Source: Epithemia pelagica (Eukaryota; Protista; Bacillariophyta). From it: DNA of 64,000 nt. The stretch covers positions 3,162,650-3,226,649 of the forward strand of contig OX337240.1 in assembly GCA_946965045.2 (NCBI GenBank). Reading direction: 5' to 3'. The notes under the pieces are model-generated. The model did not search any database. It worked only from the letters and a program-made list of their open reading frames with translations, and was not told the DNA's origin. This document shows positions 16,298 to 64,000 of the stretch, piece after piece. Both the position numbers and the translations under genes were made by a program. Every line of letters begins with the position of its first letter. Positions within the stretch are counted from its first letter, which is position 1.

Positions 16298-16640
16298 GTA
16301 GGAGGAAGAATGTGAAGGAGCTCCACCTGTTCGCTTGAGATATCACCTCTGTATGATGGCTGTGGCTTCACTTCGCTTGACGGTCCACTCTTGAGAAAAA
16401 AGGGAATAGTCTATTCTTCCAGCTCCGTTATAGGGTATACTCAATGTATACTAAATTCACGATAACTTCGGATAAGGAGGCAACTTGAGGCAACCGAGGT
16501 GATCAAGCTCTTTGCAACAAGTTGGCTGTGTGTTGTACTAGTACGCAGAAGACAATACGAGTTGCTTTGGACAACTTTCTTCTAATGTGAGCTTTTACCT
16601 AGAATGGCTGTGGTTGATTCCCTAAGTATTTTCCCCTTTT

Positions 16641-19030: not shown

Positions 19031-19083
19031 ATTTCCTGTGAATGACCTGCATTGGGCCTTTTTGTCTTGAAGATTTCCTGTGA

Positions 19084-20330: not shown

Positions 20331-20855
20331 AGGATATTTGCCTTTTTTGGGTGTCTTTAGTACTAGGCACCATAAGATTTGAACGTGTGCATATGAGCAC
20401 AAGGGGCTATAGTATCTGTGCATATGAGCACTGATATATATGCCTTTTGTTGCAAAAGAGCACTGCCCCTTGTGCAGATGAGCACAGAATGTCTATGCCC
20501 CGCTCAAGTCTAATTTCTAAGCACTCATATTCAATATGAGTCCTTAATTTCATTCATTACTAACCATTACCGCACTCTTAGTTGTTCCCCCATTCTTTTG
20601 GCGCGAAAAGCTCGCCTGCGTGCCCCTTCGCGCCAAACATCTTCACCTGAAAACCTCAATAGGCCCAATATCTTCACCTGAAAACCTCAATTGGCCCAAC
20701 AAAAGGTCATTGTTGTTTCATGAATTATGACTCTTGCAAAGAGTCCCATCCTTGCTTTTGCTTGAGAGTCGGCTGGTTATGTCTCTTCCTCTGTTCCATG
20801 CACACGAGGAAACCAGCAATGGCTACCAATAATGGGCCTGGAACGCCATCTCCAT
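20326..20855 (+). mobile_element. Type 1 left-end copy, truncated about 12 codons into the ORF
   Basis: Near-identical to 18156-18690. Sequence switches from CCATCCC|GGAG (intact) to CCATCCC|TAAGG. Confidence 0.75.
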
Positions 20856-22024
20856 CCCTAAGGATAATGCACTTTTTTTTGCTGACTTGTACAAGGACCC
20901 GTAGAAATCTACTGTTGCATATGAGCAACAATTTCCACAGTAGATTGTTGCATATGAGCATTTTGTTGCGGATGAGCAGCCATTTTGTTAAGTATTGTTG
21001 CGGATGAGCAGATAGCTTGCCTGTGCCCCCCCCCTAGATTTAGTTCCTAGCACTCATATTGAATATGGCTACTTGTTTTCTTTGACTACTAGCCATTACC
21101 GCACTCTTAGTTGTTTCCCATTCGTCTGGCAGGAAAAGCTCACCGGTGTGACCCTTCGCGCCAAAAATCATTCGGAAGTAAAGGTCATTCACCTGAAAAT
21201 CTCAATAGGCCCAACAAAAAATGACCATTCGTTGGTGTGTAAATCAGACCCAATGCAATTCTGCAAAGAGTCATTAGTAACAACGACCCTAAGGAAATTT
21301 AGGTCTAGATTCTAGTTTTTGTACCAGAGCCCGTAGCTTTCTACAGGTTGCACTTGAGCTGCATATTTTGCACATGAGCTCCCATAGGTACAGCTAGGTA
21401 TCATTACGAGCTGTTGGACTCCCAACCCACGCGCGAGCCTAGCCTTTGGCCAATCTCCACCGTCTCAGAAACCAAATTTTACTAAAGGGCTAAACTGTGG
21501 AAGTGTTTTTTATTAAATATAAGAACCCGAGCATCCAATTTTTCACCAAAACCATCCGATCCAACTTAGGATGCCTTATCAACAGCAATGCTCAACCTGT
21601 CACTCTGATGTAACTATCCAATCTGTTAGAGTAATAACAATTCTACTGCACTGTATAGTTACATCAGCACCAGCGCACCTCCAACGATGCTCATTTTCGC
21701 TCCCAAAACTGGCCTTCACGCTCGCAGCAAAATATGAGGACGAACCTCCACAGTCAGTCGGCCTACTCGATCGCCCACCCCACCCAACATTTATTTCTAT
21801 ACATACTTGAATACAGCATTTCCCACGAGTCGCAGGTCAATCGTTGTTCATTCACTAATTTCAATTGGGAAACCTCGTTTGGGCCTCTCTTCCGAAAGGA
21901 GCATCCGATGACCCCAACTTGTCGAAATTGACGATGTATCATGGATTGCTCCTCCATCTCACCACATAACACGTAATCCCCTTGCTGAAGCAATCTTTGT
22001 ATACAGACCGACCCGTTGGCAAGT

Positions 22025-22789
22025 CCTTAAGGATATTTGCCTTTTTTGGGTGTCTTTAGTACTAGGCACCGTAAGATTTGAACGTGTGCATATGAGCACA
22101 AGGGGCTATAGTATCTGTGCATATGAGCACTGATATGTATGCCTTTTGTTGCAAAAGAGCACTGCCCCTTGTGCAGATGAGCACAGAATGTCTATGCCCC
22201 GCTCAAGTCTAATTCCTAAGCACTCATATTCAATATGAGTCCTTAATTTCATTCATTACTAACCATTACCGCACTCTTAGTTGTTCCCCCATTCTTTTGG
22301 TGCGAAAAGCTCGCCTGCGTGCCCCTTCGCGCCAAACATCTTCACCTGAAAACCTCAATAGGCCTAACATCTTCACCTGAAAACCTCAATTGGCCCAACA
22401 AAAGGTCATTGTTGTTTCATGAATTATGACTCTTGCAAAGAGTCCCATCCTTGCTTTTGCTTGAGAGTCGGCTGGTTATGTCTCTTCCTCTGTTCCATGC
22501 ACACGAGGAAACCAGCAATGGCTACCAACAATGGGCCTGGAACGCCATCTCCATCCTGGAGACGGCCTGTGAAGAAGATCCGTTCCGATCAGGGCATTGG
22601 CTTGTCATGTTTAGATGCTACAATTGTGACACCCTTTGGTATGGGATGCGGCATATGCAAGAAATCATTCGGAGAAAGTCTCTGGTCCATGCAGCGGCAT
22701 CTAAATCAACATGGAGTCTATGTCTCAGCAACTGACAACCGACTCCTTGTTGCAAGAAAACAGTCCCTTGAGCAAATTTTGCAAGAAGA
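22025..22789 (+). mobile_element. Type 1 left-end copy with zinc-finger fragment
   Basis: Near-identical to 18158-18923. Broken at GAAGACCCT|CATA (intact) versus GAAGACCCT|AAGG. Confidence 0.75.
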
Positions 22790-24276
22790 CCCTAAGGAGA
22801 AAGTGCTCGTCTGTAGGCCCTCGTAGACTCTGTACTGCATATTTTCCCACCTGGGAGCAGCCCCTGTCTCATATTTTCCCACCTGGGAACAGCCCAGCCT
22901 CATATTTTCCCACCTGGGAACAGCCCTCGTCCTCATATTTTCCCACCTGGGAACAGCCCCTTTCTCACTGTAGAGCAGCCCACCTTCCCCATATTTTCCT
23001 ATTTGGGGTCGTATTCCCCCTCTGTTGTACAGCCCTCATCCCCAATATACTCCCAAGCCCATACATATTAAAGCTAGGATTTCCTAGATATAAGCTAGAT
23101 CTATACACATGACTATCGATAGTATTAATTTTCTTCACTTGAAGATCTCATTTTTTGGTCATTGGGCCCAACACCAGTCATTCTGTTCAAGATTTCTGGT
23201 GAATGACCCTCCTTTGGGCCTGTTGTCTTTGGGTATGTTTTCGCACAAGAATCATACATGGATGACTCGTCACATTCTGCTGGGTGACTTCATAGTTCCT
23301 CCTGCCGTGGTACATGCATGTTTGATTGTTGCCAACACACACCTCTATCAGCAATCAACCAGTATTGTGAATCTATGGTGAGTGCTTGATACCGAAAGCA
23401 TCTATGATTCATCATTCTCGATTCCTATTTCTAACATCAGCTACTTTCTACTATTCACATTGGCACACAGGAAGGAGTTGAACGAGGGAATGTCACATGT
23501 CAGCTCCAGTCAAGTCTCTTCCAGGCTTGCTGCAGGTCTCGTTCTCTTGTGGACATGAAAAATAAGTCGCTTCAAGCGCCTTTGAAGTGGGCAGTCTCTG
23601 GGCCCATGAGGAACATAGCCTGGTCTGTTGAAGGGCTCGAAACAGGCAAAACAGGCTTTGTTCTTGAGCACCCGAGAAACACTCACCGGACATTTACTTC
23701 TTCGGTGGTTTGTTGATCCACAGTTGAAACAGGATCCATAGTCAAGGCACTTCTCCCCATTGCATGTTGCATCCATGCAAACAACACATTGAACAATCAA
23801 ACGTTGGATGCACTCTTCTGCCATGGACGATTCAATGTCTTGCCGTCTGACTCTTTCAACTACTTGTGTCTGTCCACTCTCTTGGGCCTTTTTCCTGCAG
23901 AAATCGCAAACCCCACAATGTGTTACACGAATGCCAAACTTCTGTGAAATATTTGCAACACGACAACCATGCTCTTGCAACCAATTTTTTATGGAAGCTG
24001 ATCCAAATATGGCTTCGAAGCTTTTCCTTGGCCGCTCTCCAACAATCAACCGTTTTGCCTGAGGCGTCTTCAGGGTCATGTCCTCGTCCATGTCCCCTCT
24101 CTGAAAACCTGTTGGGTACAATAAGGTGAAACTTCCATTATTCTTTCGCTGGCTTGGTCGTAGTCGGCCAATCGCTTGTACATCGTTCATCAGTCTATAA
24201 ATCAATCCACATACGATAACATGCCGACACAGGTCATTTTCAATTCCGCAGAGACCACATGTTGTTGATATCAACA
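22790..24276 (-). mobile_element. Inverted 3' portion and right end of a YR-RecQ element
   Basis: On the minus strand: helicase C-terminus, 3' UTR, subterminal motif and repeats, ending ...CTTTCTCCTTAGGG at 22790. Confidence 0.7.
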
Positions 24277-24277
24277 C
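23510..24277 (-). pseudogene. RecQ-like helicase C-terminal fragment with Zn-binding region and CCHC knuckle
   Basis: VLISTT, QAIGRLRPSQR, CGVCDFC (RecQ Zn-binding), CFNCGSTNHRRSKC, CFACF, CPLQRRLKRL. The frame stays homologous past the TGA at 23510 (LELTCDIPSFNSFLC). Confidence 0.75.
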
Positions 24278-24377
24278 CCTAAGGAGAAAGTGCCTGTCCG
24301 TAGGCCTATGTAGACTCTAGCGTCCCACTGCAGAACAGCCCCCATCCCACTTGTCCCACTGCAGAATCGCCCTCTAT

Positions 24378-25448
24378 CCCTAAGGATATTTCACTTTTTT
24401 GGGAGCTTTTAGTACTAGAGACCGTAGAATTTGAACGTGTGCATATGAGCACAAAATCCTATAGTGCCTGTTGCATATGAGCAAGGATTTGTTGCGGATG
24501 AGCTGCAATTTGTTATGCTTTTGTTGCGATTGAGCAGTGGCCTTGTCTATGCTCCTTTGACCACTCCCCAAAAGCAGTCATATTCAATATGCTCTATACT
24601 GGCCAGATACTTTTCAGAGCTCTGCCAGCTAGGTTTTTGTCTTGCCCTACTCTACATAGAAGAATCAACGTAAGATTGAATTTCCTTTGGTTTGCTGTAC
24701 ACAATTTCCTTGTTACAACAAACCAGCTAATATGTGTGTACAAGTGACATATATTTGTACACAAATGACCAACTAACTTTTTTGTACAATCTTTTTTCCT
24801 GCCAAATGACGCTGGCATTTCATAGAAAAATCTCATTTCACCCATCACTAGTTCTCATCAAAATCCCATTTTGACCATTCCTAGTTTATGCCTCTAGGTC
24901 TTTGTACCTACCCATCATTCGTCCAGTAAATTGGGCCCAATGCAATTCTGCAAAGGGTCATCACTCCCTTTCTTTGATGAACGATGAAAGATGTCTCTTG
25001 AACACTCTCAGCAAAACCTCTATCAACCATGGCTTCCCCCTCTAATAATGGGCCAGGGACTCCTTCTCCATCAAGGAGGAGACCAACGAAGAAAAAAAAG
25101 GAAGAGGACAAACTACAGGCTGTCGATGTCACGCTAGTGACCCCCTTTGGTATGGGATGTCGCCTATGTGGGAAACCGTTTGGAACCAGTCTATGGTCCA
25201 TGCAAAGGCACCTTAATGGCCATGGTGTGTCTGTCTCACATTCTGAAAGCCAGACACTGATAAAACATCAAATGACCCTCCTTCAAGGTGTTATGCAAGA
25301 CATTTCAAGTGTTTCTCAATCTATGACGGGGGAAAAGGTCAAGTGCTATTCATGTCATTGTCTTGTTGGGAGCTTGAAACTTCAAAATGTGTACAGACAT
25401 TTGTCCTCGGGTCGTACCTGCAGTGCTCCCTCCCCTACAGAAGAGGAA
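24378..25448 (+). mobile_element. Variant left end + zinc-finger ORF fragment (25029-25448)
   Basis: CCCTAAGGATATTTCAC...; MASPSNNGPGTPSP...CRLCGKPF...MQRHLNGH, a paralog of the type 1 protein. Confidence 0.7.
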
Positions 25449-26174
25449 CTAAGGATATTTGCCTTTTTTGGGTGTCTTTAGTACTAGACACCGTAGGATT
25501 TGAACGTGTGCATATGAGCACAAGGGGCTATAGTATCTGTGCATATGAGCACTGATATGTATGCCTTTTGTTGCAAAAGAGCACTGCCCCTTGTGCAGAT
25601 GAGCACAGAATGTCTATGCCCCGCTCAAGTCTAATTTCTAAGCACTCATATTCAATATGAGTCCTTAATTTCATTCATTACTAACCATTACCGCACTCTT
25701 AGTTGTTCCCCCATTCTTTGGCGCGAAAAGCTCGCCTGCGTGCCCCTTCACGCCCAACATCTTCACCTGAAAACCTCAATTGGCCCAACAAAAGGTCATT
25801 GATGTTTCATGAATTATGACTCTTGCAAAGAGGCCCATCCTTGCTTTTGCTTGAGAGTCGGCTGGTTATGTCTCTTCCTCTGTTCCATGCACACGAGGAA
25901 ACCAGCAATGGCTACCAACAATGGGCCTGGAACGCCATCTCCATCCCGGAGACGGCCTGTGAAGAAGATCCGTTCTGATCAGGGCATTGGCTTGTCATGT
26001 TTAGATGCTACAATTGTGACACCCTTTGGTATGGGATGCGGCATATGCAAGAAATCATTTCTGTCTTTGGTCCATGCAGCGGTATCTAAATCAACATGGA
26101 GTCTGTGTCTCAGCAACTGACAATCGACTCCTTGTAGCAAGAAAACAGTCCCTTAAGTAAATTTTGCAAGAAGA
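25449..26174 (+). mobile_element. Type 1 left-end copy with degraded zinc-finger fragment
   Basis: Copy of 22025-22789 with the same 3' breakpoint and small deletions. Confidence 0.75.
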
Positions 26175-26860
26175 CCCTAAGGAGAAAGTGCCTGTCCGTA
26201 GGCCTACGTAGAATCTAGCGTCCCACTGCAGAACAGCCCCAATCCCACTTGTCCCACTGCAGAATCGCCCTCTGTCCCACTGCAGAAGTGCCCTGTCCCA
26301 CTGCAGAACAGCCTGCTGTCCCACTGCACAACAGCCCACTAGAACAGCCCTATTCTAGTCATACCTATGCCCATGCTTATTAGTTATTCCTAGCTCGACT
26401 AGTTTCATTTCCCGTCACTACAAGTGTGACTGGGTCAGATTCTTGTGTGAAATGACCCTTCTTTGGGCCTAATATTTTTTTGTGAGACGTGATTAGATTT
26501 TTTGTGAGATGACTCTTCTATGGGTCTTTTGATGATGGTCTTTAACCCGACACACAGTACCTACTAACTTAATACTATCTACTTGAATGCTTTCTTTGCA
26601 TATGGATTCCTTGGTAGAGCTGGTCGTGCCACAGACGGTCTGGCTGCTGTGGTTGCATGAGGTGTCTGTGTCACTGTCATGCCCATCCGTTGTTCAACAC
26701 TCTGACACAGAAAAGCATGAAACGAATGGCTGTCGCATGTTACTTCGGACATGAAATCAGTCATTGCTCTGGATTGTCCATTGGTCTTCCTTGACTCATA
26801 TACATCGATCATCAGCCGCTTCAATCTTCGTTGTAAAGGACATCAGCAGAACTCTCATTG
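26175..26860 (-). mobile_element. Second inverted right end with extreme helicase C-terminus (26579-26860)
   Basis: The minus strand encodes CPLQRRLKRLMIDVY...EVTCDSHSFHAFLC, matching the 23510 fragment, then ends ...CTTTCTCCTTAGGG at 26175. Confidence 0.7.
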
Positions 26861-26886
26861 AGAATTCAGAAGGGTAATAGGTAGTT

Positions 26887-29800
26887 GGGTAAAAGGCTCG
26901 CTGAGCCGACAATCAAATCACCAACCGATACAACAATCCTCCACGGGTCAGAGAAGAGTTGCAAGTCGAAGTCCGCCGTGGGTGGGGGCAGTCGGTCCAC
27001 TGATAAGAGGTTAGTCTTAAGATGAGTTTTAAATGGTGATATTAATGATTGTGAGACGATTACTAACTAAGGTGGTTGATGGTGCCGAAGTCCTGGCTCT
27101 TGTATACGGCCATGGATCTGGTGTGATAGGTCCTCACTGGTTGGAGTAGACCGGCATTGGTGTATATTGAATGTATAGGGTGATGGATAACATGTATGGG
27201 ATGCAACAGCTCTTGCTTTGTCGTGTTTTAAGTCTTGTGCTGGGCGCGTTGCTGTTTGCATTCTTGGATTTGTGGGAACAGAGATATGGTCTCGCGTGAT
27301 CGTGATTCGTGCTTTGATAACATAGACCGTTAGGTCGAATCGTGGATGTGCGTACTCGGATAGTCAAGGCGCGCATTCGATGGTTTTGGGCGCGCACGTG
27401 TTGGGCCATAGTTAATATCCAGGCGGTCGCCGATAACACGTGCAATGCGAGCATGCCATGGCCAAATTTATAGTTTCGCGAGCATGCCGACATTCCTTCC
27501 TCACTTTTAGGAAAATGTCATCGGATGCCATAAAATACTAGCATCATTCGATGAGTTGTAGGTTTCGCCACCTAGTTTTCGGTGAGAATCCTAACACTCC
27601 CCACAATTTGTCGAATGAGGATTGTTATTTTCCTTGTCATGCTTCTGAACGTTTCCTCCCCAGAAGAATATGATCTTGAACATGGTCCATACTTTCGAGA
27701 ATTTCCAATGCTTGTTGAGAATGTCTCCTGGATGTTCTCATAGTCATCATTCTTGAGTTGGTAGGTCTTGTCGATGCCCTTTGAGCTATGCTCCCCAGGT
27801 GCCTTCTTCATCCAAACATTGGGATCTGCTTTAGTTGGTGACAAATCCATATCAATTGGGGTGTCAAAGAAACAGTCACGCCGACATGCTCCTGAAGATT
27901 TTAATCCCTTGGAGGCCTTGTGCGTAATCAAGATGTGACCTGATTCTCTCCAGATAAAGCTTCCAGGTCGTGCGCATTTCCAACTTTTGCTCCCCATATA
28001 TCCACATCATTGAGAATCCCAAGACAGGTGGTTGTATGGAAGTTGTGAATGGAAGTAGTACACAAAAAGATTACCTCACCCAGTTCTTTGGTAAAAGCCT
28101 CGTCTGTGATGAGAAGTGCTGGGCGACTATCATCATGGTTTACAAGATGGATTCGAATCTTGTTCTTCTGATACTCTTCTGGTGATGCATTTATCATTTC
28201 CCTTCTTTTGAACTGAGCTTGAACGCAATCCTTGATTTTTGTGAGGGATTGGATCTGTGAAACCTGAAAGAGCTCAACTTTGGTAGTGTCGTGCCACTTT
28301 CTTTTACCATGTTGCTTGTCTAACAAAACAACTAATTCTTCATTTGTCTTTGAAACTTGATAACCAAACTTGTACTTGATGGAACGACAGACTTGCTTGA
28401 TTCTTGACTGCTGTTTGGCAGCTTGAACAAGGCATTTACTGGTCTTGACAAAATGCTTGAGATGTTTCCATCCAAGTTCATTCAATAGATCATGTTTCTT
28501 GGCATAGGCATCATTTACCACGAGTGACGGAGGCTCATAGATCATCGCCCCAGTCTCCCAATCAACAAGTATATTACAGTGACTTCTTTTGTAGTCAGGA
28601 TTGTTGCTAATACTTGACGGTTCTTGATCTGCAACAACGTCTCTGAACTGGAAAACGTCATCTTCAGTTGCCTGTGCTTGGTTGTCCTGTTTGATGTATT
28701 CCATATGTTGACGGTATGAAATTATCTTGTCAATGTCGGAAATGGATTTGCAGAAAGTGTACTTGATATAGTCTTTTTGCTTGAGAGCATCTTGTTCTAA
28801 ATCAACGATGCATCTGATAAGACATGGTTGTGGTTGCTCCCCATTATATGGTTGTCGTTGCTCCCCATTTTCCTCTGGATCATAAACAAGGAAAGGTTGT
28901 CCAATAGTGTTATCACATTTGATCATAGGCATTTGCGTGGATGAATCTTCACCTTTGCTACAAATGAAAATGGGTTTATTTGAAAGCTACTCCTCTCCTG
29001 AAGAGGTATCCACACAAAGGTTGCTGGGTGGCGTGGGTGCATCATGAAGAATGGCAGAGTAACAAAGGGTTTGAGTGTCCAGAGACAAAGTATCACCAAT
29101 AGAAGGGGCAAAAACAAGCCAGTAGCCAAGTGTCGTGACAAAAGAGGGAGGGTAGGGACGGTAGGGACGGTGGGAGAGGGCATATGATTCGGTAAAGTAG
29201 GGGGCCTTGTCCCAGATAAGGAAGAAAAGTGGGTGGGTAATGCCGGGTGGGCGACCATTGAGGATCTCAAGAGGGATATGGCCCGAAACGGTCACGGCGT
29301 ATGTTGTCCTCTTAACGGTCTGGTAACGGTTCTCAGCCATGTTCTGATCTTGGAGGTATGGTTTGGAACAGTATTCTCCAAGCAGGGGTGTGAAGAAGGA
29401 AGGCGTATCAGGTCCATGATCGTAAGGTAAATCCAAGAGAAGGTTGAGGTTACAGACAACACGATTGGTATACTTCCCAAAAGCATCATGCGGATTGTTG
29501 CCATCATTTTCAACAGTCCTTGAAGAAGGTGCCGTATCTTGCATGGGATCAAGATACCAATGATTATAGCCAGTCAATTGATTGTCACCGGAGAAAGTAG
29601 ACATGCGAGAGAGCAGATGTCGAGATATCTCAACTTTCTGTTTACAGTTGTTGTTCTCGAGACAATCATTAGGGATGGATGTTGCCTTGATATTGGACAC
29701 CAAATTAGCAAGATCAGATGTTGGATGATTGACATCAATATTGGTCACAACTTGTGGAACCAACCGGGTAATCAGATCAAAGAAATTATCTTGATGGTCT

Positions 29801-31123
29801 TGGGAATCATCTTGAATCATGTCGTCAATCCATGCACGACCAGGGTCGGGATCAGGTTCCGGCTCAATGTCAAGAGTATGCGTCTGTTCCATGCATGCAG
29901 TTGTTGATGACAGATTCTGGGTAGACTTGTTGTACGCAATGATTACTTGACGACTATTGTCGTTGAGTTTACTCCACAGATCTCTTGGAAGACTGATCTT
30001 TGGACGAAGCGAAGATGATTTCTTGGTCTTCACGTTAGTTCTCTTAATCATGCGGTGTTTTTCTTTGGGTGATAGATCTTTGATATCAAAATCTTGATCA
30101 TATTGAAAGTCGCATTGCTTGGTATGCTTAAGTCGGTTAGACTTTGGTGCTCGAGTTGCTTGGTCATGATCATATGCGGCATCAAGGAGAAGACGGAAAT
30201 ATGATTGATAACAAAGTGTCTTTGCACCAGACAAGATGTTGACTTGTCGTAAATCAGGTACCTTTTCAACGGCTTTCATCAGGAAGGTCATCCTAGTGGA
30301 GTGGCCAGGAATGTGATCAAACATTGATCCCAGATTGTCGAGAAGATGGAATTGGTGTTGAAAGTGGAGAAGAAACTGATAGGTTGTGCCGTGCCATGAA
30401 TCATCGAGACAAAGATTGGAGATGTAGTTGTTAAGACGTAGCACCTCTCTTTTTGCTAAACAAAATGACGAAATGCAACCTTGGTTCAGACGGAGCTTGG
30501 TGAAGTCTGCATTGATTCTCCAATGATCATAATTGGCCTTGGTGAGGTTCAACCAGGTAGAGCGAGGTAAATCAGACTGCTGCAGGGTTGAGTTTGTTCT
30601 CGTGACCAATGTGCTAGGATCTTCAGTTGATGCCTTGTAAATGTCTTCAGATCCATCGTCTTGTTCCCATACTTGTATTGTCCAAGGTCCTTGATATTCT
30701 TTTCTGGATTGACTGCAAGATAGTCGATGACATTCAGAATGTGTTCGAAACCACTATGTTTTATCCATTGATGAAGGGCTTGAGCTCGTTCTTCATCACA
30801 TTCAAATAGATGCTGGGTGATATGATTGAACACTTGTGTATCTGATATGTCAGGCGGTACTGAGTCGTCAGAAGGAAGAGAAGGTGTCTTGGGGTATGTT
30901 GGATCCATGGTAGTATATGGTTGGTTCGTTGTTTATTTAATGTGTGGTGTGATCTGAACCCAGATGTACCACGTGTGTGCCACGTATATCAGTACCCGGA
31001 TGTGTGTTGTGCTGGGAACCCGGATGTGTGGAACTCGGTTTTGTCTCTGGTTTGTTGTGGAAACTACTTAAAGATACTTATCCTTGGTCACTTTCGGACT
31101 TGTTGCGGTGATCGAGTTGAACC
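26887..31123 (-). mobile_element. Degenerate Ty1/copia (CoDi-like) unit, copy 1
   Basis: gag-like ORFs 30549-30908 and 28987-30609 (LLLDAAYDHD, ISLPRDLWSKL); pol remnants 27572-28932 (ILVDWETG, KYKFGYQV, decayed DIxNAYL). PPT-like AAAAGTGAGGAAGGAA followed by TGTCGGCA at 27492 (minus). Near-identical to 54654-58931. Confidence 0.75.
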
Positions 31124-31479
31124 GCGTCTAAGGGCAGCGTCACGCGCCCCCAAAACGCACACCCCATACGCGCCGTCGGCATGCGCCATTTTTCGTACCC
31201 GGTTTTTTTATACGGATTTACACCATTTTGACTAATCCCCCCCACCATCACGCACATACAACATCATACACATTCACGGCGACCCTATCTTCCACGCACG
31301 CACACTCCCATCTTCCACGCACAGAGAACTTACCTTCTAAGCACACTGACCTTGCCCTCCACGTCCAAAACACTCTGAACACAAAGTACCAACCTCATCA
31401 GAACAAGGCATCTATACACCCTCTCCACAGGTGCAATAACACAAGGGCAAACCCCCAATCTCTCCTATCCCATTCTCCA

Positions 31480-54270: not shown

Positions 54271-54316
54271 TTGGTGGAATTCCAGTCACTTATCTTCAAA
54301 AAACCTCCTTAGACGC

Positions 54317-57300
54317 GGGGAGTCAGGAATAATGGTAGCTTCCTCGTCTTGCTCGTAGTCCTCAGCAAAGTACTGGTCAGGTGAGTATTGGGAGGTAGTT
54401 GCACGAAGTCCTGGTCCAGCTTGAGGTCCTGGAATAGGAGAGGGTTGATGACCCTAGCCTTAGCCAGGCTGGCCCTGTTGTTGGGTTGGGTAGCTTTGTC
54501 CTCTAACTCTTGTTTGTTGGTGTAGCTCAATCTGTACTCAATGTAGATGGGTAAGTATGATCTCCAATGCGACTGCAGGGCAATGAGCGATGAGACTGTT
54601 AATCTGATAAACTTCTCTCGATTCAACAGGGGTTAGACAGATAGGTAGGATAGGTAAAAGGCTCGCTGAGCCGACAATCGAATCACCAACCGATACAACA
54701 ATCCTCCACGGGTCAGAGAAGAGTTGCAAGTCGAAGTCCGCCGTGGGTGGGGGCAGTCGGTCCACTGATAAGAGGTTAGTCTTAAGATGAGTTTTAAATG
54801 GTGATATTAATGATTGTGAGACGATTACTAACTAAGGTGGTTGATGGTGCCGAAGTCCTGGCTCTTGTATACGGCCATGGATCTGGTGTGATAGGTCCTC
54901 ACTGGTTGGAGTAGACCGGCATTGGTGTATATTGAATGTATAGGGTGATGGATAACATGTATGGGATGCAACAGCTCTTGCTTTGTCGTGGTTTAAGTCT
55001 TGTGCTGGGCGCGTTGCTGTTTGCATTCTTGGATTTGTGGGAACAGAGATATGGTCTCGCGTGATCGTGATTCGTGCTTTGATAACATAGACCGTTAGGT
55101 CGAATCGTGGATGTGCGTACTCGGATAGTCAAGGCGCGCATTCGATGGTTTTGGGCGCGCACGTGTTGGGCCATAGTTAATATCCAGGCGGTCGCCGATA
55201 ACACGTGCAATGCGAGCATGCCATGGCCAAATTTATAGTTTCGCGAGCATGCCGACATTCCTTCCTCACTTTTAGGAAAATGTCATCGGATGTCATAAAA
55301 TACTAGCATCATTCGATGAGTTGTAGGTTTCGCCACCTAGTTTTCGGTGAGAATCCTAACACTCCCCACAATTTGTCGAATGAGGATTGTTATTTTCCTT
55401 GTCATGCTTCTGAACGTTTCCTCCCCAGAAGAATATGATCTTGAACATGGTCCATACTTTCGAGAATTTCCAATGCTTGTTGAGAATGTCTCCTGGATGT
55501 TCTCATAGTCATCATTCTTGAGTTGGTAGGTCTTGTCGATGCCCTTTGAGCTATGCTCCCCAGGTGCCTTCTTCATCCAAACATTGGGATCTGCTTTAGT
55601 TGGTGACAAATCCATATCAATTGGGGTGTCAAAGAAACAGTCACGCCGACATGCTCCTGAAGATTTTAATCCCTTGGAGGCCTTGTGCGTAATCAAGATG
55701 TGACCTGATTCCTTGAGTTCTTGTCTTGCAACTATCAAGATCTTCTCTCCAGATAAAGCTTCCAGGTCGTGCGCATTTCCAACTTTTGCTCCCCATATAT
55801 CCACATCATTGAGAATCCCAAGACAGGTGGTTGTATGGAAGTTGTGAATGGAAGTAGTACACAAAAAGATTACCTCAACCAGTTCTTTGGTAAAAGCCTC
55901 GTCTGTGATGAGAAGTGCTGGGCAACTATCATCATGGTTTACAAGATGGATTCGAATCTTGTTCTTCTGATACTCTTCTGGTGATGCATTTATCATTTCC
56001 CTTCTTTTGAACTGAGCTTGAACGCAATCCTTGATTTTTGTGAGGGATTGGATCTGTGAAACCTGAAAGAGCTCAACTTCGGTAGTGTCGTGCCACTTTC
56101 TTTTACCATGTTGCTTGTCTAACAAAACAACTAATTCTTCATTTGTCTTTGAAACTTGATAACCAAACTTGTACTTGATGGAACGACAGACTTGCTTGAT
56201 TCTTGACTGCTGTTTGGCAGCTTGAACAAGGCATTTACTGGTCTTGACAAAATGCTTGAGATGTTTCCATCCAAGTTCATTCAATAGATCATGTTTCTTG
56301 GCATAGGCATCATTTACCACGAGTGACGGAGGCTCATAGATCATCGCCCCAGTCTCCCAATCAACAAGTATATTACAGTGACTTCTTTTGTAGTCAGGAT
56401 TGTTGCTAATACTTGACGGTTCTTGATCTGCAACAACGTCTCTGAACTGGAAAACGTCATCTTCAGTTGCCTGTGCTTGGTTGTCCTGTTTGATGTATTC
56501 CATATGTTGACGGTATGAAATTATCTTGTCAATGTCGGAAATGGATTTGCAGAAAGTGTACTTGATATAGTCTTTTTGCTTGAGAGCATCTTGTTCTAAA
56601 TCAACGATGCATCTGATAAGACATGGTTGTGGTTGCTCCCCATTATATGGTTGTCGTTGCTCCCCATTTTCCTCTGGATCATAAACAAGGAAAGGTTGTC
56701 CAATAGTGTTATCACATTTGATCATAGGCATTTGCGTGGATGAATCTTCACCTTTGCTACAAATGAAAATGGGTTTATTTGGAAGCTACTCCTCTCCTGA
56801 AGAGGTATCCACACAAAGGTTGCTGGGTGGCGTGGGTGCATCATGAAGAATGGCAGAGTAACAAAGGGTTTGAGTGTCCAGAGACAAAGTATCACCAATA
56901 GAAGGGGCAAAAACAAGCCAGTAGCCAAGTGTCGTGACAAAAGAGGGAGGGTAGGGACGGTAGGGACGGTAGGGACGGTGGGAGAGGGCATATGATTCGG
57001 TAAAGTAGGGGGCCTTGTCCCAGATAAGGAAGAAAAGTGGGTGGGTAATGCCGGGTGGGCGACCATTGAGGATCTCAAGAGGGATATGGCCCGAAACGGT
57101 CACGGCATATGTTGTCCTCTTAACGGTCTGGTAACGGTTCTCAGCCATGTTCTGATCTTGGAGGTATGGTTTGGAACAGTATTCTCCAAGCAGGGGTGTG
57201 AAGAAGGAAGGCGTATCAGGTCCATGATCGTAAGGTAAATCCAAGAGAAGGTTGAGGTTACAGACAACACGATTGGTATACTTCCCAAAAGCATCATGCG

Positions 57301-59066
57301 GATTGTTGCCATCATTTTCAACAGTCCTTGAAGAAGGTGCCGTATCTTGCATGGGATCAAGATACCAATGATTATAGCCAGTCAATTGATTGTCACCGGA
57401 GAAAGTAGACATGCGAGAGAGCAGATGTCGAGATATCTCAACTTTCTGTTTACAGTTGTTGTTCTCGAGACAATCATTAGGGATGGATGTTGCCTTGATA
57501 TTGGACACCAAATTAGCAAGATCAGATGTTGGATGATTGACATCAATATTGGTCACAACTTGTGGAACCAACCGGGTAATCAGATCAAAGAAATTATCTT
57601 GATGGTCTTGGGAATCATCTTGAATCATGTCGTCAATCCATGCACGACCAGGGTCGGGATCAGGTTCCGGCTCAATGTCAAGAGTATGCGTCTGTTCCAT
57701 GCATGCAGTTGTTGATGACAGATTCTGGGTAGACTTGTTGTACGCAATGATTACTTGACGACTATTGTCGTTGAGTTTACTCCACAGATCTCTTGGAAGA
57801 CTGATCTTTGGACGAAGCGAAGATGATTTCTTGGTCTTCACGTTAGTTCTCTTAATCATGCGGTGTTTTTCTTTGGGTGATAGATCTTTGATATCAAAAT
57901 CTTGATCATATTGAAAGTCGCATTGCTTGGTATGCTTAAGTCGGTTAGACTTTGGTGCTCGAGTTGCTTGGTCATGATCATATGCGGCATCAAGGAGAAG
58001 ACGGAAATATGATTGATAACAAAGTGTCTTTGCACCAGACAAGATGTTGACTTGTCGTAAATCAGGTACCTTTTCAACGGCTTTCATCAGGAAGGTCATC
58101 CTAGTGGAGTGGCCAGGAATGTGATCAAACATTGATCCCAGATTGTCGAGAAGATGGAATTGGTGTTGAAAGTGGAGAAGAAACTGATAGGTTGTGCCGT
58201 GCCATGAATCATCGAGACAAAGATTGGAGATGTAGTTGTTAAGACGTAGCACCTCTCTTTTTGCTAAACAAAATGACGAAATGCAACCTTGGTTCAGACG
58301 GAGCTTGGTGAAGTCTGCATTGATTCTCCAATGATCATAATTGGCCTTGGTGAGGTTCAACCAGGTAGAGCGAGGTAAATCAGACTGCTGCAGGGTTGAG
58401 TTTGTTCTCGTGACCAATGTGCTAGGATCTTCAGTTGATGCCTTGTAAATGTCTTCAGATCCATCGTCTTGTTCCCATACTTGTATTGTCCAAGGTCCTT
58501 GATATTCTTTTCTGGATTGACTGCAAGATAGTCGATGACATTCAGAATGTGTTCGAAACCACTATGTTTTATCCATTGATGAAGGGCTTGAGCTCGTTCT
58601 TCATCACATTCAAATAGATGCTGGGTGATATGATTGAACACTTGTGTATCTGATATGTCAGGCGGTACTGAGTCGTCAGAAGGAAGAGAAGGTGTCTTGG
58701 GGTATGTTGGATCCATGGTAGTATATGGTTGGTTCGTTGTTTATTTAATGTGTGGTGTGATCTGAACCCAGATGTACCACGTGTGTGCCACGTATATCAG
58801 TACCCGGATGTGTGTTGTGCTGGGAACCCGGATGTGTGGAACTCGGTTTTGTCTCTGGTTTGTTGTGGAAACTACTTAAAGATACTTATCCTTGGTCACT
58901 TTCGGACTTGTTGCGGTGATCGAGTTGAACCGGGGAGTCAGGAATAATGGTAGCTTCCTCGTCTTGCTCGTAGTCCTCAGCAAAGTACTGGTCAGGTGAG
59001 TATTGGGAGGTAGTTGCACGAAGTCCTGGTCCAGCTTGAGGTCCTGGAATAGGAGAGGGTTGATGA
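54317..59066 (-). mobile_element. Degenerate Ty1/copia (CoDi-like) unit, copy 2, plus the first 135 bp of a third tandem copy
   Basis: 54654-58931 matches 26887-31123, and 58932-59071 repeats 54317-54456 (period 4615 bp). ORFs 55337-56731, 56786-58417 and 58357-58716. Confidence 0.8.
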
Positions 59067-59137
59067 CCCTAATAGTTTTGCTAGGAATTGACCTTTTTCC
59101 GGTGCGCACTAAGTTCACTCTGTAGAATCACATGCGC

Positions 59138-59539
59138 GACCGGAAAAAGGTCGATTTCAAATCACTGTATTGCTGCGTGCTATATTTAGTGCGACCGGAA
59201 AAAGGTCGATTTCGACCGGAAAAAGGTCGATTTCAGAACCTACATTAACTCTCCATAGTAAACCATATTCCTTCTTGTCGCTCAAAGATTTTGAGGTGAA
59301 TGATCTCTGGTGTTAGGGCCTTTTCAGTTTTTGAGGTGAATGACCCTCTTTAGGGCCTCTTTTTTGGCTGCAAAGGGTCATACGTTTCAGAACCTACATT
59401 AACTCTCCATAGTAAACCATATTCCTTCTTGTCGCTCAAAGATTTTGAGGTGAATGATCTCTGGTGTTAGGGCCTTTTCAGTTTTTGAGGTGAATGACCC
59501 TCTTTAGGGCCTCTTTTTTGGCTGCAAAGGGTCATACGT
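59138..59539. repeat. Leader repeats: 3x CGACCGGAAAAAGGTCGATTTC and a 154-bp tandem duplication
   Basis: Seen directly; the duplicated units start at 59231 and 59385. Confidence 0.85.
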
Positions 59540-59578
59540 CCCAAACCTATTTTGACCATAGGAACGACAACAGCCACC

Positions 59579-62500
59579 ATGGAGTTTGACGATTACTTGG
59601 GGCTTGTGGACTTTGCCACACCCTGTGGCTTGGTCTGTAAACTCTGTGGTGTTGGTTTCCGAGCAAACATGAAGTGCCTTGCTCGTCACGCCAAGACTTG
59701 CTCTGAGGTTCATGCAGTGTCATTTCGGTTCCCTGGAAGACATCTTGGAAAAAAGATACACGACTTGGTGGAGAATGCCAACAACCAACCGTTTGATTGT
59801 TTCATACACGAGTCCAAGGAAACAGATATCAAGTATTTCTGTGGTCACTGTGACAAGATGTTTCACAAGAAGCTTTTGTGCGAGAAGCACACTGCTGGTT
59901 GTTGCAACAATGCTGAAGTGATTCCGAAGACCTTCCACAAGCTGAAGTGTGGATGCTTCATGCCAAGGCCCCAAAGAGAAACCATGCAGCAAAAAACCAA
60001 CTGGACCCCAATAATTCAAGTTGAGAATTCAACATTTACCATGCCGTTGCCCTGCAGCAGGTTACCCAACGAGTTTGCAAGTTCGATTGAACCATTATTG
60101 CATCCAAGCGACACTTTGGGAAGGTGGCCCGATGTACTGAGTAATATGATTCCTGGCACGTTGGAGAATGCCCTTGGAGACATTGAACAAGGAATTATGT
60201 TTGAAGCCGAGTATCATAAGAGAGGAAATAACACTGCAATCAACCGACTCTATCAGGTTGGTTGTTACCTTCTGGACAGAGTGGCTTCGATCGTAATGGG
60301 GATTCCAGCAGACATTCGGAGTCGGATTGCTAAGTTTGATTTCCATGATGGTGATGTGGATCACTCATGGAATTTCAGCCATCGACATGATTATGACAAA
60401 CGAGTGAAACCTCTACTCCTCTCTCTCTTGTGTTTCCTGCATCAGAGGCAGTGGAAGAGATGGAACTATTTTTGCCGCCAGGTTGAAGGTGATGGATTCT
60501 CTGTGGACACTGCATTCCAAAATTGTGTTCTTGGGTCACTCCTGACAGAGTTGGTACTCGACAGTGAGATTTCTTGTTGGTCCGACTCAGGGGTAGTGTT
60601 ACTGTTCTCTCGGCAGAGGTTGTTCACTAAGACGAAGAATGGCTTGAGGTTGAAATCATGTGGAGTTGCCGCTCAAGAACTCGGTGAGTCCCCCTTTCCC
60701 CCTGTCAATGAATATACTTGGTTGTTCAAATCTCATGTCTTCTTTCATCTCTTTCTAGCTGACCTTTTACATCTGCTTCGCTGTGGGGTTGCGGCTGGCT
60801 TAAAATACTACGATGGGCAGGGCAAGTTGGTCGAGCAGGTCATGGAACGGTACAGACATTGTCCTACAATACACTTTCTCTGTCCTAAGATTTATTCTTT
60901 GAGGAAGCAATATCAAGAGAAGCCTCCTAAAAGGGAGGTTGTGGTCGATGAGTTCTTCAATATCATTGTTGATGGACATGCATTCCAAAAAGCACATTGG
61001 TCTAAGGTCGTTCCTACGGTTGTGGAAAAGGCCCACGGTATTTTTGATGCATGCTTTGTCGGAAAGGCATACGAGAAATTCCTCTGCTTAGATGGTGACT
61101 TGACTATTGTGGAGTGGTCCAAGGGTTTGGGATCGCTGCCAGATGGTACCAACACACAAGATTTGGAATGCAAGGAACTGGTGAAAAGTCAGTTCGAACG
61201 ACTAACTGCCTTGATGGAATTTGCCATCCATGGTTTTGGCTGTGGTGCAGATCGGTTCTCAGAGGTCCATTGTCTCGATGTGACTCAGCTTCGGTGGAAA
61301 AATACAAACTACCAAGATTTATATGTTTCTGCACCGAGTCGTAAACAACCCAAACTGCAAGCTGATGATCGACCCCCTGTTGAACACAAGATGCCTCGGA
61401 TCATAGCAAGGTGTCTATTTCTCTACAGAGTTGTGGTGCTGAAAGTTTGGAATGGGCCCAATGCAAGGAGATTTTTTCCACAATATGGTAATGACCGGAG
61501 GTTTTTCTTTGAGGATGTTGCCCAAGAGATTTTCAGCTTGGATAGTCGTCCTGGTTCAGTGGTTGTTCGACAGTTCTGGACTTCTCTTGTGAACTTGCTC
61601 TTTCCAGACAGCAACAGTCAGGCATTGGTCTCTTCAACAGCATTGAGTGAGTTGAGTAAGCACTCCCAACAGACTGCAATGTCCAACTACCAGACACGCG
61701 TGAGCAACAGTCATGAGATCTACTATGCCCGATTTCATCGTTACATCGGTACCAAATGTATGATCGTGGACTCGGTATGCCATCAGCTGACAATAACAAG
61801 CCGTCAGCATCGGTTAGAAGCATTACGATTGTTGTTGGGTGATGAAGAAGCAACATTCCGAGGCAATCAAGAAACAGCAATTGATATGTGCACCAATTCA
61901 CCGGGAAGACATAAACTTATGCTTCAACCTTGTGGATCGGGCAAAACCATGAACATCTTGGTGCGTTGTGTGGTGGAATCCATTCGAGGACTGAAGACTT
62001 CGACCAACATGTTTCTTGTGCCCTACAACTTCTTGGCTAGCTATCAAATGGTCAAAGTCAAAGCCTTCTTGGAAAAGGCATCACAAACTTTGGGTTTGCA
62101 TGATGGTTTATGTGTCGAGATGTTGGCAAAGAACGATCTATGTCATGAGAATTGGCCCAACTGGTTTGCACGGGATGACTTGCCCGAAGTCATAGTGATG
62201 ACAATCGATGGATTTGCGACCTTCTTCAAAGACCATCTAACAAAACTTTCTGGATGGTGCTCCAATGGAAAGTTGAATGGGATTTTTGTCGATGAGGCAC
62301 AAACCATCGTTACAGAGGTCGACTTCCGTCCATGCTATTCTTGTCTACGGGAAATATCTGCACTTGGAGTCGCCGTAACACTGATGTCTGGAAGTATTTC
62401 GATGAGTTTTGGTCAGAAATTGATGGACTTCCTCGATTTGAGTGGTTCTGCATATCACGGATTGTCGGATTATCTCTCGGGAGAGAACCCAGTTGGTGAT

Positions 62501-63461
62501 GGATTCGACTTACATGTGAGATATGTACAAAAATCTGTTGGGGCAGATGTCGTTGACATTGTGACTGAGAAGACCATGCGACATGTCCACGTGATTTGTG
62601 CAAGCAAGGATATGGTTTTGGAGGTTTATGAAGCACTGTGCTTATCTCATCCTGGCTTGAATGTTGAGAAGTTAACTTCGGAGAGTGAACAACAGGTTAG
62701 AGATGGCGTGGCATCTTCCTGGGCAGACGGTACTACAAATATTCTTGTGGGAACGACCTGTACCTTGGTCGGTAATGAGAATCAAAGATGCAGAACAATC
62801 ATGATCATTGGCATGTTGTATGATTGCTCAAATGTTGTACAGTCCATGGGAAGACTAAGGCCGTCACAACGTGGAAATAATTCTTCTGTCCATATTCTAA
62901 TCCCGTTTCAAGACTTCAACAATGATGGGGCAATCCGGGTAAAGACTAAGAGACGTTTGGACTATCTGAGAGAAATTGGTTTGCTCACGAATGAGGAAAG
63001 CCTTGACTGTGTTACTGACTGCTTCACAATGCATGGATTGAAGATGTGGTTGACTAAAGAGGGATGTATGAAGACAAACCTCTGTCGTTGTTTCGAATAT
63101 CATACAGAACACCAGTGTGGGCGGTGCACCAACTGCTGGAAAGGAATTCTGTGGATATATGATGGAAATTCAACCAGTGACAATGACGGCAAACGAAAAA
63201 GACATGCCAAAGATATTGAGCAAGGTGGCCAAAATGTGATACGAAGAACACTCTTGGAACCAAGTACAATGTCTAAAAAAGCTATTCCATGTGCTACTGG
63301 TGCTATACAGCCACTTGCTAAAAAAGGTCGGGTTCCAAATCCATATGCAACACAACGAAACAAGTTCAATGAAGTGCAAGAACATGGCCTTGTACGACGA
63401 GAGAATCAAGTAAGGGAGAACGTCTGGAAGGAAAAGGCAAACGAAAACCTTCGACAATTGC
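59579..63461 (+). CDS. Zinc finger + tyrosine recombinase + RecQ-like helicase fusion (~1290 codons, no stop codon)
   Basis: Hand translation is open from ATG 59579 to the telomere: CKLC...RH and CGHC...KH zinc fingers; GCGADRFSE, VVRQFWTS and LSKHSQQTAMSNY (YR-like); FRGNQETAI, QPCGSGKT, FVDEAQ, LMSGS, ILVGTT, QSMGRLRP and CGRCTNC. Probable in-frame 75-nt intron at 60684-60758. Confidence 0.85.
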
Positions 63462-64000
63462 TTAGGGTTAGGGTTAGGGTTAGGGTTAGGGTTAGGGTTA
63501 GGGTTAGGGTTAGGGTTAGGGTTAGGGTTAGGGTTAGGGTTAGGGTTAGGGTTAGGGTTAGGGTTAGGGTTAGGGTTAGGGTTAGGGTTAGGGTTAGGGT
63601 TAGGGTTAGGGTTAGGGTTAGGGTTAGGGTTAGGGTTAGGGTTAGGGTTAGGGTTAGGGTTAGGGTTAGGGTTAGGGTTAGGGTTAGGGTTAGGGTTAGG
63701 GTTAGGGTTAGGGTTAGGGTTAGGGTTAGGGTTAGGGTTAGGGTTAGGGTTAGGGTTAGGGTTAGGGTTAGGGTTAGGGTTAGGGTTAGGGTTAGGGTTA
63801 GGGTTAGGGTTAGGGTTAGGGTTAGGGTTAGGGTTAGGGTTAGGGTTAGGGTTAGGGTTAGGGTTAGGGTTAGGGTTAGGGTTAGGGTTAGGGTTAGGGT
63901 TAGGGTTAGGGTTAGGGTTAGGGTTAGGGTTAGGGTTAGGGTTAGGGTTAGGGTTAGGGTTAGGGTTAGGGTTAGGGTTAGGGTTAGGGTTAGGGTTAGG
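63462..64000 (+). repeat. Telomere (TTAGGG)n, ~90 perfect repeats
   Basis: Uninterrupted TTAGGG to the end of the window. Confidence 0.99.

Follow-up and report, generated by a model that had tools for sequence, protein, structure and literature searches.

A telomere-adjacent repeated element with a predicted tyrosine recombinase-fold domain and a RecQ-like helicase in the diatom Epithemia pelagica

Telomere-linked helicase genes and the Y' elements of yeast have long been suspected to be former mobile elements, and we know of no enzyme identified as able to move either of them. Tandem Y' copies in yeast are separated by telomere tracts. The Y' element of S. cerevisiae (Y'-Help1/YRF1) resembles the diatom element described here in being multi-copy and telomere-adjacent with one long helicase ORF, but differs in these tracts, as the diatom element has a single inverted telomere unit per join.

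RecQ-like helicase genes have been reported at many fungal chromosome ends (PMC1635262, PMC4522978). The fungal telomere-linked helicases, including S. pombe Tlh1/2, Magnaporthe TLH1, Ustilago UTASa and the subtelomeric RecQ of Zymoseptoria, share this distribution with the diatom family. The literature that we found on them describes helicase genes without defined termini or a recombinase, whereas the diatom family has termini and a predicted recombinase domain. A helicase ORF in a telomere-adjacent repeated element, as in Y' and the telomere-linked helicases, is present in the window (the whole 64,000-nucleotide stretch of E. pelagica DNA analysed), in contig L001 and in a contig of Fistulifera solaris. 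Our literature search, with subscription journals outside its coverage, found no description of a tyrosine recombinase-RecQ helicase fusion, and no published mention of a recombinase domain in Y' or telomere-linked helicases was found.

Boundaries of the terminal copy

The last 4.9 kb of this E. pelagica chromosome end are a truncated copy of a repeated DNA element, organized as follows:

59067-59072, + strand: inner (5') element terminus, one telomere-type unit CCCTAA (flank comparison)
59086-59234, + strand: short subterminal repeats, with ACCGGAAAAAGGTCGATT present in three direct copies and one inverted copy (repeat search)
59231-59538, + strand: leader 5' of the ORF, two exact 154-bp tandem repeats (repeat search, 100% identity)
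59579-63461, + strand: 3'-truncated ORF of 1294 codons encoding a zinc-finger-like N-terminus, a predicted tyrosine-recombinase-fold domain and a RecQ-like SF2 helicase (translation)
63462-64000, + strand: telomere (TTAGGG)89, directly after ...CAATTGC, within coding sequence

The initial annotation had placed the ORF between a single CCCTAA on the left and the telomere on the right, and both are indeed present. Flank comparison put the join between recipient and element within CCCTA (59067-59071): the left flank (58931-59071) is 100% identical to 54316-54456, and this reference runs on with GCCTTAGCC, whereas the flank of the terminal copy continues with ATAGTTTTGC instead. The join lies in non-element DNA, and its empty site is also present in contigs of run X1. 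A same-family copy at L001:9642 begins with CCCTAAGGGTTTTGC, and the subterminal region is conserved at 91.6% in L001:9642-9971. An 8-bp palindrome, GTGCGCAC, was detected at ~59102-59109 by palindrome scan, and together with the subterminal short repeats it provides candidate protein-binding sites. Such palindromes are weakly enriched, occurring in five of about eight terminus types versus 19% of random 60-mers. Within the leader repeats, a contig of run X2 carries another element joined at 59347 (CCCT followed by AAGGAGAAAGTGCC).

At the outer side, element-derived sequence stops at 63461, past which same-organism contigs of X1 and X2 read on with GAGAAAAGTGTTTCTACTGCC...; the terminal copy has therefore been cut short and newly capped by a telomere. 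The unlisted ORF that the initial annotation proposed at 59579-63461 starts with ATG at 59579 as an intact frame and enters the telomere repeats as (Arg-Val)n without a stop codon; it was missing from the program-made ORF list because its frame runs past the window end. The frame is real but incomplete, as intact copies from the same organism go on to encode a CCHC zinc knuckle past the truncation point. Lacking a stop codon, the window copy may be dead. The dN/dS between the window ORF and the L001 copy is 0.32.

Domain architecture and homologs

The ORF product comprises three regions:

59636-59905, + strand: two C2H2/C2HC-like patterns, aa 20-41 and aa 88-109 (weak regular-expression matches)
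60929-61753, + strand: predicted tyrosine recombinase/topoisomerase IB-fold catalytic domain, aa 451-725 (AF2 model, fold searches, hhalign)
61253, 61343, 61568, 61661 and 61688, + strand: candidate catalytic residues R559, K589, R664, H695 and Y704, respectively (alignment columns)
61865-63136, + strand: SF2 helicase core with a RecQ-type four-cysteine zinc motif (Pfam, profile versus PDB)

The C2H2-like fingers suggested by the initial annotation hold at the level of pattern only: two C-x2-C-x12-H-x3/4-C patterns are present, but Pfam gives no zinc-finger match for the N-terminus of the window copy. The equivalent finger of the L001 paralog matches zf-C2H2_4 weakly (E = 0.022), and the N-terminal pattern occurs in 27 of 56 long homologs.

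The AF2 model of the central domain (pLDDT 91, pTM 0.83) has a tyrosine recombinase fold. An earlier model from five sequences was poor (pLDDT 62), yet it already pointed to recombinases. Foldseek against the PDB returned tyrosine recombinases or topoisomerase IB as all of the best 46 matches, with probability up to 0.99 at E-values of only ~0.02, and the seven VIA-align matches at Z>=8 are all Xer/Cre/integrase catalytic domains, with 150-190 residues aligned. Since two independent structure aligners put only tyrosine recombinases and type IB topoisomerases on top, assignment to this superfamily fold is supported. The R...xxR(H/Q)...H...Y motif read in the initial annotation corresponds to R559, R664 (followed by Q665), H695 and Y704. 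In the 68-homolog alignment R559, K589, R664 and H695 are invariant and Y704 is retained in at least 90% of members, and the recombinase catalytic set is apparently intact. Profile alignment by hhalign against XerD/XerC/Cre/lambda Int/FimB/FimE (E = 7.6e-4) aligned the catalytic R, R, H and Y, pairing R559, R664, H695 and Y704 with R148, R247, H270 and Y279 of XerD; K589 was not put on XerD K172. The catalytic histidine matching XerD H244 is unconserved in the family by both the alignment and hhalign, and its equivalent is also unconserved in topoisomerase IB and telomere resolvases. None of the 68 members matches any Pfam recombinase family at E<=1 (Phage_integrase and its relatives, Crypton-derived families included), and the central domain gave no match to Pfam or PDB sequences as a single sequence or as a 5- or 68-sequence profile.

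The C-terminal half corresponds by its motifs to a RecQ-like SF2 helicase, in agreement with the initial annotation. Pfam recognizes DEAD at aa 763-926 and Helicase_C at aa 992-1092, with the Walker A motif GSGKT at aa 786 and VDEAQ at aa 904. The RecQ-type zinc motif C-x17-C-x2-C-x2-C (aa 1163-1186) is kept in 47 of the 56 long homologs, and the zinc region of E. coli RecQ (370-405) aligns to it in the profile comparison with the PDB. The best PDB profile match of the N-lobe is RECQL5 (E = 1.7e-5), and that of the C-lobe is the RIG-I-like helicases. The NCBIfam recQ score lies far under the cut-off, and no winged-helix or HRDC domain was detected.

Word-indexed searches gave only one near-identical copy or one protein; an exhaustive profile search was required, which revealed 341 homolog clusters in public data, the long members sharing the same layout. 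In F. solaris, an outward-pointing homolog is separated by 1.8 kb from a contig end of (TTAGGG)n. Upstream of this homolog, at a distance of 1.8 kb and next to ordinary genes, there is a CCCTAA. In metagenome relatives, CCCTAAG[GT] precedes the ORF, and two elements without detectable DNA similarity to each other have 25 of their first 30 terminal bases in common; contigs L002, L014, L015 and L017 do not reach a recognizable terminus. The paralog that had been pointed out at 16641-18161 in the window is 25% identical over aa 392-795 (E = 5e-34). The idea of the initial annotation withstood both the fold comparison and the homolog survey, where homologs turned out to be present in multiple copies, linked to telomeres and bounded by CCCTAA-type ends. 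A repeated element that stacks at chromosome ends and combines zinc finger, recombinase and RecQ-like helicase within a single protein is therefore supported.

Joins and stacks at chromosome ends

Further copies are stacked in an interior part of the window:

16620-26876, + strand: internal array of truncated elements, at least 11 in number and from several diverged families, all of which start at (C)CCTAAGG

The array holds elements in both orientations without telomere tracts between them, and element units and termini occur in both orientations at two chromosome ends (window and L001). One terminus is common to several families that are only ~25% identical in protein. At the 10 independent joins with an untruncated reference, the element end (C)CCTAAGG abuts the recipient, whose outer part is lost, and the recipient already reads CCC, CCCT, CCCTA or CTA in all 10, where a chance 3-nt match has a frequency of 1 in 64 per join. 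Every join has at most one telomere unit, in inverted orientation, and no interstitial telomere tracts were found between stacked copies. Imprecision at three of about 21 joins (CCTAAGG, CTAAGG and CCTTAAGG) speaks against cleavage and ligation by the recombinase with strict precision; short G-tail annealing and host repair fit these at least as well as precise recombinase chemistry. The array join at 22790 is identical to that at 26175, representing a segmental duplication within the array. All joins are one-ended; as the recipient sequence never resumes beyond an element, nested insertion was rejected.

Terminal copies have received telomeres at three different points of truncation, namely 63461, 59593 and inside the L001 satellite, and contig word depth along the element declines in the 5' to 3' direction by a factor of about five. 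Altogether, a new copy joins by either terminus to a resident chromosome-end site already reading CCC(T)(A), all sequence distal to this site is lost, and the outward element end or a later break point receives a TTAGGG cap; repeated addition yields polar stacks in which the elements are truncated distally. None of the copies found has both of its termini intact, the two terminus types coming from different families, and no free linear or circular copy was seen. Two element termini head to head would give a perfect 16-bp palindrome. A search for CCTTAGGGCCCTAAGG, the junction expected from head-to-head joining or from a circle, gave 26 metagenome contigs, approximately the chance level, and in none of them does it lie near a family gene; short-read assemblies rarely keep such junctions.

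Proposed mechanism and relation to known systems

We propose that an autonomous DNA element probably lives at diatom chromosome ends and that the terminal copy is its outermost, truncated representative. The complete unit would be ~7 kb long, starting with one telomere-type unit (5'-CCCTAAGG), followed by a repeat-bearing leader of 0.5-0.65 kb, one intronless gene of ~1300-1400 codons and a 3' region, and closing with an inverted unit (CCTTAGGG-3'). Its gene product would combine the zinc-finger-like N-terminus, the tyrosine recombinase domain, the RecQ-like helicase and the CCHC knuckle. The recombinase may cut at the terminal unit and/or release or resolve a free copy, and the short CCC(TA) overlap may guide the joining of strands, whether the recombinase performs this itself or an annealed ...TTAGGG-3' tail and host repair do so. 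The helicase would open the chromosome end or drive copying, and the outward TTAGGG-3' would act as a telomerase primer.

Two accounts of the joining step deserve serious thought. The recombinase itself might cleave a donor end, or a free copy capped by a telomere, at the terminal CCCTAA/GG and exchange strands at a chromosomal CCC(TA) with a 3-5 bp overlap, swapping the resident tip for element and telomere. This agrees with the seemingly intact and invariant catalytic set, with joining at a fixed terminal unit by short homology at every join, and with the finding of only one unit at any join; low-homology tyrosine recombinases are established for IntDOT and Crypton-type elements. The imprecise joins speak against it, as does the CCCTAA unit itself, which has no flanking inverted binding sites, and neither a reciprocal product nor a donor form was seen; we thus regard it as plausible, though short of probable. 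Alternatively, the ...TTAGGG-3' tail of a free linear copy might anneal to CCC(TA) in the resected strand of an uncapped end and be sealed by microhomology-mediated end joining, with the recombinase and helicase confined to the production or replication of the free copy, for instance through the resolution of replication intermediates. The microhomology that varies from 3 to 5 nt, the trimmed or imprecise joins, the constant loss of the distal part of the recipient, the visibly eroded terminal copies healed by telomere addition and the equal use of both element ends are all in line with such repair. However, simple end joining predicts joins with zero homology and joins with two or more units, neither of which was seen, and the free form was not observed, so that this account, too, is credible without being the expected one.

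The family might also have no mobility of its own, as is the case for many telomere-linked helicase genes of fungi; it would then be a subtelomeric gene family of the host that spreads only by ordinary subtelomeric recombination or break-induced replication, with the recombinase-like domain as a relic. The telomere linkage, the resemblance to Y'/Tlh1 and the segmental duplication in the array are compatible with this, but it appears unlikely in view of precise termini common to such diverged families in both orientations, the join at 59067 in non-element DNA, the catalytic residues invariant across the family and the dN/dS value. An origin as a telomere-specific retroelement, of a type such as HeT-A/TART, SART/TRAS or Athena/Coprina, would explain polar stacks of elements that are truncated distally and keep their inner terminus intact. 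The strand running to the end carries the C-strand repeat as its inner unit, the opposite of what G-overhang priming predicts; this origin is highly improbable and was rejected because the ORF and six full-length homologs contain no reverse transcriptase and because the stacks have both orientations.

Among reviewed proteins, the closest by fold are the Y' helicases of S. cerevisiae. A fold search of the central domain against Swiss-Prot returned YRF1 copies as matches 1-8 (E = 2e-5 to 1e-3, probability 1.0), spanning roughly residues 200-790 in the longer copies, and residues 610-1099 of S. pombe Tlh1 match weakly (E = 0.036); these matches rank ahead of or among bacterial recombinases. Many fungal proteins annotated as "DNA 3'-5' helicase", "C2H2" or "Tyr recombinase domain" also match at ~1e-5. 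By predicted fold, the diatom protein thus belongs with yeast Y' and the fungal telomere-linked helicases, an affinity at fold level only. The initial annotation had presented the element as a candidate new one. We found no published account of the fusion, but Y'-Help1, and weakly Tlh1, carries the same fold before the helicase, and the diatom element is therefore a branch of the telomere-linked helicase elements and not an unrelated invention. We read the family as their diatom branch, with the recombinase apparently intact.

The element also differs from other mobile systems. Cryptons, which include stramenopile lineages, are likewise DNA elements of eukaryotes that encode a tyrosine recombinase and show short homology at their joins. 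They code for a recombinase but no helicase, insert at internal sites where both of their ends are retained between short direct repeats, and lack telomere-unit termini, whereas the diatom joins are one-ended and the helicase is fused to the recombinase. The telomere resolvases TelK, TelA and ResT act on DNA ends and share the recombinase/topoisomerase IB-type fold with the diatom domain; TelA is among the Foldseek matches, in which Xer, Cre and Flp score better than the resolvases, and neither a hairpin nor a palindromic junction was found near a family gene. Drosophila HeT-A/TART and other telomere retrotransposons similarly form head-to-tail end stacks with the inner end intact and the outer end variably truncated, but they are RNA-mediated and need a reverse transcriptase, whereas the diatom element has none and stacks in both orientations.

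The conserved catalytic set, the one-unit telomere termini and the CCC microhomology joining rule offer a concrete, testable mechanism, and the element stacks, erosion and telomerase healing illustrate how a diatom chromosome end is built and repaired. The family provides a non-fungal lineage for comparison with telomere-linked helicases, and its Pfam-invisible recombinase clade would extend the catalogue of eukaryotic DNA-joining enzymes. Tentatively, and with slightly less than even confidence, we suggest that Y' elements, fungal telomere-linked helicases and the diatom elements form one ancient class of DNA-based "telomere transposons", mobilized by a tyrosine recombinase fused to a RecQ-like helicase, with a telomere unit at each end, which add themselves to chromosome ends and pass the new end to telomerase. 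If so, the diatom copies would be the first with the recombinase catalytic set and element termini still legible, and the class would represent a DNA counterpart of Drosophila HeT-A/TART.

Anatomy of the terminal copy

The frame that the initial annotation had placed at the telomere, joining a recombinase to a helicase, is confirmed, with 1294 codons running from 59579 to a telomere of 89 TTAGGG units.

59067, forward strand: single CCCTAA, the left boundary of the terminal element
59579 (start ATG), forward strand: ORF of 1294 open codons, then (Arg-Val)n read into the telomere
63462–64000, forward strand: telomere, TTAGGG x89, directly adjoining ...CAATTGC

The ORF was absent from the ORF listing solely because its frame runs off the window end. 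Between the CCCTAA and the ATG, the leader carries three direct copies and one inverted copy of an 18–23 nt repeat, followed by two exact 154-bp tandem repeats. Past 63461, contigs of the same organism from public runs read on GAGAAAAGTGTTTCTACTGCC..., which in frame gives ...EKCFYCH, a zinc knuckle present in full-length relatives, so the copy in the window has been truncated and its end healed by a telomere. Such contigs also contain a second copy healed by a telomere at 59593, in addition to a different element joined within the leader of the terminal element at 59347. Word depth in the contigs is about five-fold lower in the 3' part of the element than in its 5' part. The point at which terminal copies end varies, and each is capped by TTAGGG repeats that overlap its end by 0–2 nt.

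The only near-identical protein in the databases is encoded on an ENA contig whose final 22.7 kb (L001) form a further chromosome end, with TTAGGG repeats at the tip and stacked elements, one of which has an untruncated gene (L001:15723–19646). The gene is under selection, with a dN/dS of 0.32 between the window and L001 copies. In L001, the stretch from the stop codon of the terminal element to the telomere is occupied by about 15 copies of a 178-bp G/T-rich satellite (L001:19694–22386), and the telomere addition point falls inside a satellite unit.

The recombinase-fold domain and the helicase half

Pfam matches in the ORF protein are limited to DEAD (aa 763–926) and Helicase_C (aa 992–1092), and for residues 385–760 neither Pfam nor PDB gives a sequence match. 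An exhaustive profile search gathered 341 homolog clusters, 119 of them with E<=1e-30, and many homologs are 1300–1600 aa long with the same layout as the window protein. When 68 sequences of the central domain are aligned, R559, K589, R664, H695 and one glycine are invariant, whereas Y704, E562 and a few more columns are retained in at least 90%.

The AlphaFold2 model built from this alignment (pLDDT 91, pTM 0.83) was compared with known structures. The best 46 Foldseek matches in PDB, at weak E-values of ~0.02, are tyrosine recombinases and type IB topoisomerases only, including XerH (probability 0.98–0.99), Flp, Cre, XerA, TelA, and the poxvirus and human topoisomerase I. An aligner independent of Foldseek returned exactly seven chains at Z>=8, all of them catalytic domains of Xer, Cre or integrase, with 150–190 residues aligned. 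Profile comparison against XerD, XerC, Cre, lambda Int, FimB and FimE gave an E-value of 7.6e-4 over 136 columns, in which R559, R664, H695 and Y704 are aligned to R148, R247, H270 and Y279 of XerD. The first catalytic histidine of tyrosine recombinases is not conserved in this family, nor is it known to be conserved in topoisomerase IB and telomere resolvases. Fold matches and aligned catalytic residues therefore assign the central domain to the tyrosine recombinase/topoisomerase IB superfamily, as a divergent, apparently intact member; the recombinase fold foreseen by the initial annotation is thus borne out by the model and both structural aligners.

For the helicase half, the best match of a three-helicase family profile is the N-lobe of RECQL5 (E 1.7e-5), and the same profile aligns a C-x17-C-x2-C-x2-C motif (aa 1163–1186) with the part of E. 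coli RecQ that binds zinc. On these two matches the label of RecQ-like SF2 helicase is reasonable, despite the best score of its C-lobe being against RIG-I-like helicases. The N-terminus has two C-x2-C-x12-H-x3/4-C patterns. All three domains originally proposed are supported, the zinc fingers at the pattern level only.

Termini, joins and proposed routes to the chromosome end

At about 21 joins (window 16620–26876 and 59067, and L001), an element terminus of the form (C)CCTAAG(G/T) meets unrelated upstream sequence, which supports the earlier proposal of a telomere-linked, self-stacking element. No telomere tracts were found between stacked copies. Two types of terminus occur: behind CCCTAAGGATATTT... 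come a leader and an ORF that points outward, whereas CCCTAAGGAGAAAGTGCC... leads, after 0.4 kb, to the stop codon of an ORF that points inward and so marks an inverted copy's 3' end. Taken together, the two types suggest that a complete unit would read 5'-CCCTAAGGA...TCCTTAGGG-3', with one telomere unit at either end in inverted orientation; none of the copies found retains both ends intact. The same termini are common to families that are just ~25% identical in protein. Most terminus types also contain a perfect 8–12 bp palindrome 20–40 nt from the end (GTGCGCAC, TAGTACTA, TAGGCCTA, CTCTACGTAGAG; for example window 59102–59109, 18188–18195 and 24301–24308), and most have a GTAG motif further inward; in the first 60 nt of the termini, palindromes are modestly enriched over random 60-mers.

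In all 10 independent joins whose upstream sequence also occurs as a longer copy (22790 and 26175 being counted once), the recipient already had CCC, CCCT, CCCTA or CTA at the breakpoint, and what should follow it is missing. At 59067 the recipient is a non-element 141-bp sequence (58931–59071), the other copy of which (54316–54456) runs on GCCTTAGCC. These 100% identical 141-bp copies bracket the second of two 4.3-kb repeats (window 26877–31124 and 54641–58932; 99.5% identical), which carry long minus-strand ORFs with no Pfam match. Leftmost in the internal array, the element at 16620 adjoins the gene-bearing part of the window, with subtilase and SET-domain ORFs (1872–10600), and this position may be a former chromosome end since lengthened by ~47 kb of elements and transposons.

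The sequence data establish the element's anatomy, its rule of joining, the loss of distal recipient DNA, healing with telomere repeats and selection on the gene. For the part played by the enzymes we infer one of two routes, which we consider about equally likely. The recombinase might cleave at the terminal unit and pass the cleaved strand on to CCC(TA), an overlap of a few bases being enough, a version favoured by the invariance of the catalytic set and by the strict limit of one unit per join. Alternatively, the ...TTAGGG-3' tail of a free copy might anneal, at an uncapped end, to CCC(TA) in its resected strand, and host repair would seal the joint, with the recombinase and helicase only releasing or replicating the free copy; three imprecise joins (CCTAAGG, CTAAGG and CCTTAAGG) favour this route. 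No free form of the element was found, and a search of metagenome contigs for the palindromic junction expected of a circle or head-to-head dimer gave unrelated matches only. A passive host gene family is unlikely, because precise ends are shared across deeply diverged families and both orientations occur. A retroelement was ruled out, as the element has no reverse transcriptase.

Relatives and kinship with telomere-linked helicases

In the diatom Fistulifera solaris, the gene of the homolog GAX28224.1 is oriented towards a (TTAGGG)n contig end that is 1.8 kb away, and a CCCTAA lies 1.8 kb upstream of it, just beyond ordinary genes; this unit of ~7 kb is comparable to L001:15074–22390. Together with the window and L001, it bears out the expectation of multi-copy, telomere-linked homologs with CCCTAA-type ends. 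The closest AlphaFold clusters have accessions that we believe to be from Thalassiosira pseudonana. Relatives from Tara Oceans and biofilm metagenomes carry CCCTAAG[GT] upstream of the ORF, and in two of them without detectable DNA similarity to each other, 25 of the first 30 terminal bases agree. One metagenome member (P0022, L015:994–5817) has a match to a Tet-like 2OG-Fe(II) oxygenase (PF20515, E 2.6e-4, below the cut-off) C-terminal to the helicase. Three others have a second ORF of 296–356 aa directly after the recombinase-helicase gene (L003:6715–7605, L005:8080–9024 and L017:5013–6083), without a Pfam match in the first two; the Epithemia pelagica copies have no such ORF.

Among reviewed UniProt models, the top eight places for the central domain go to S. 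cerevisiae helicases encoded by the Y' element, with probability 1.0 and E-values of 2e-5 to 1e-3, the matched part being the region that precedes their helicase domain, and S. pombe Tlh1 is a weak match (E 0.036) ranked among bacterial Xer proteins and Flp. The AlphaFold clusters contain dozens more, which we take to be fungal from their accessions and which match at ~1e-5 under the names 'DNA 3'-5' helicase', 'C2H2-type domain' and, once, 'Tyr recombinase domain'. Language-model neighbours are also fungal. By its modelled fold, the diatom element is a relative of the telomere-linked helicase elements, a kinship for which these matches argue.

Telomere-linked helicase elements have been described as RecQ-like helicase genes (PMC1635262, PMC4522978). 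In the literature searched on tyrosine recombinases, RecQ and telomeres, no paper ties a telomere-linked helicase to a tyrosine recombinase and the recombinase-RecQ fusion is undescribed. The element is best placed among these telomere-linked helicase elements as a new variant from diatoms, one that exposes a recombinase and defined ends and could thereby explain the movement of the whole group.
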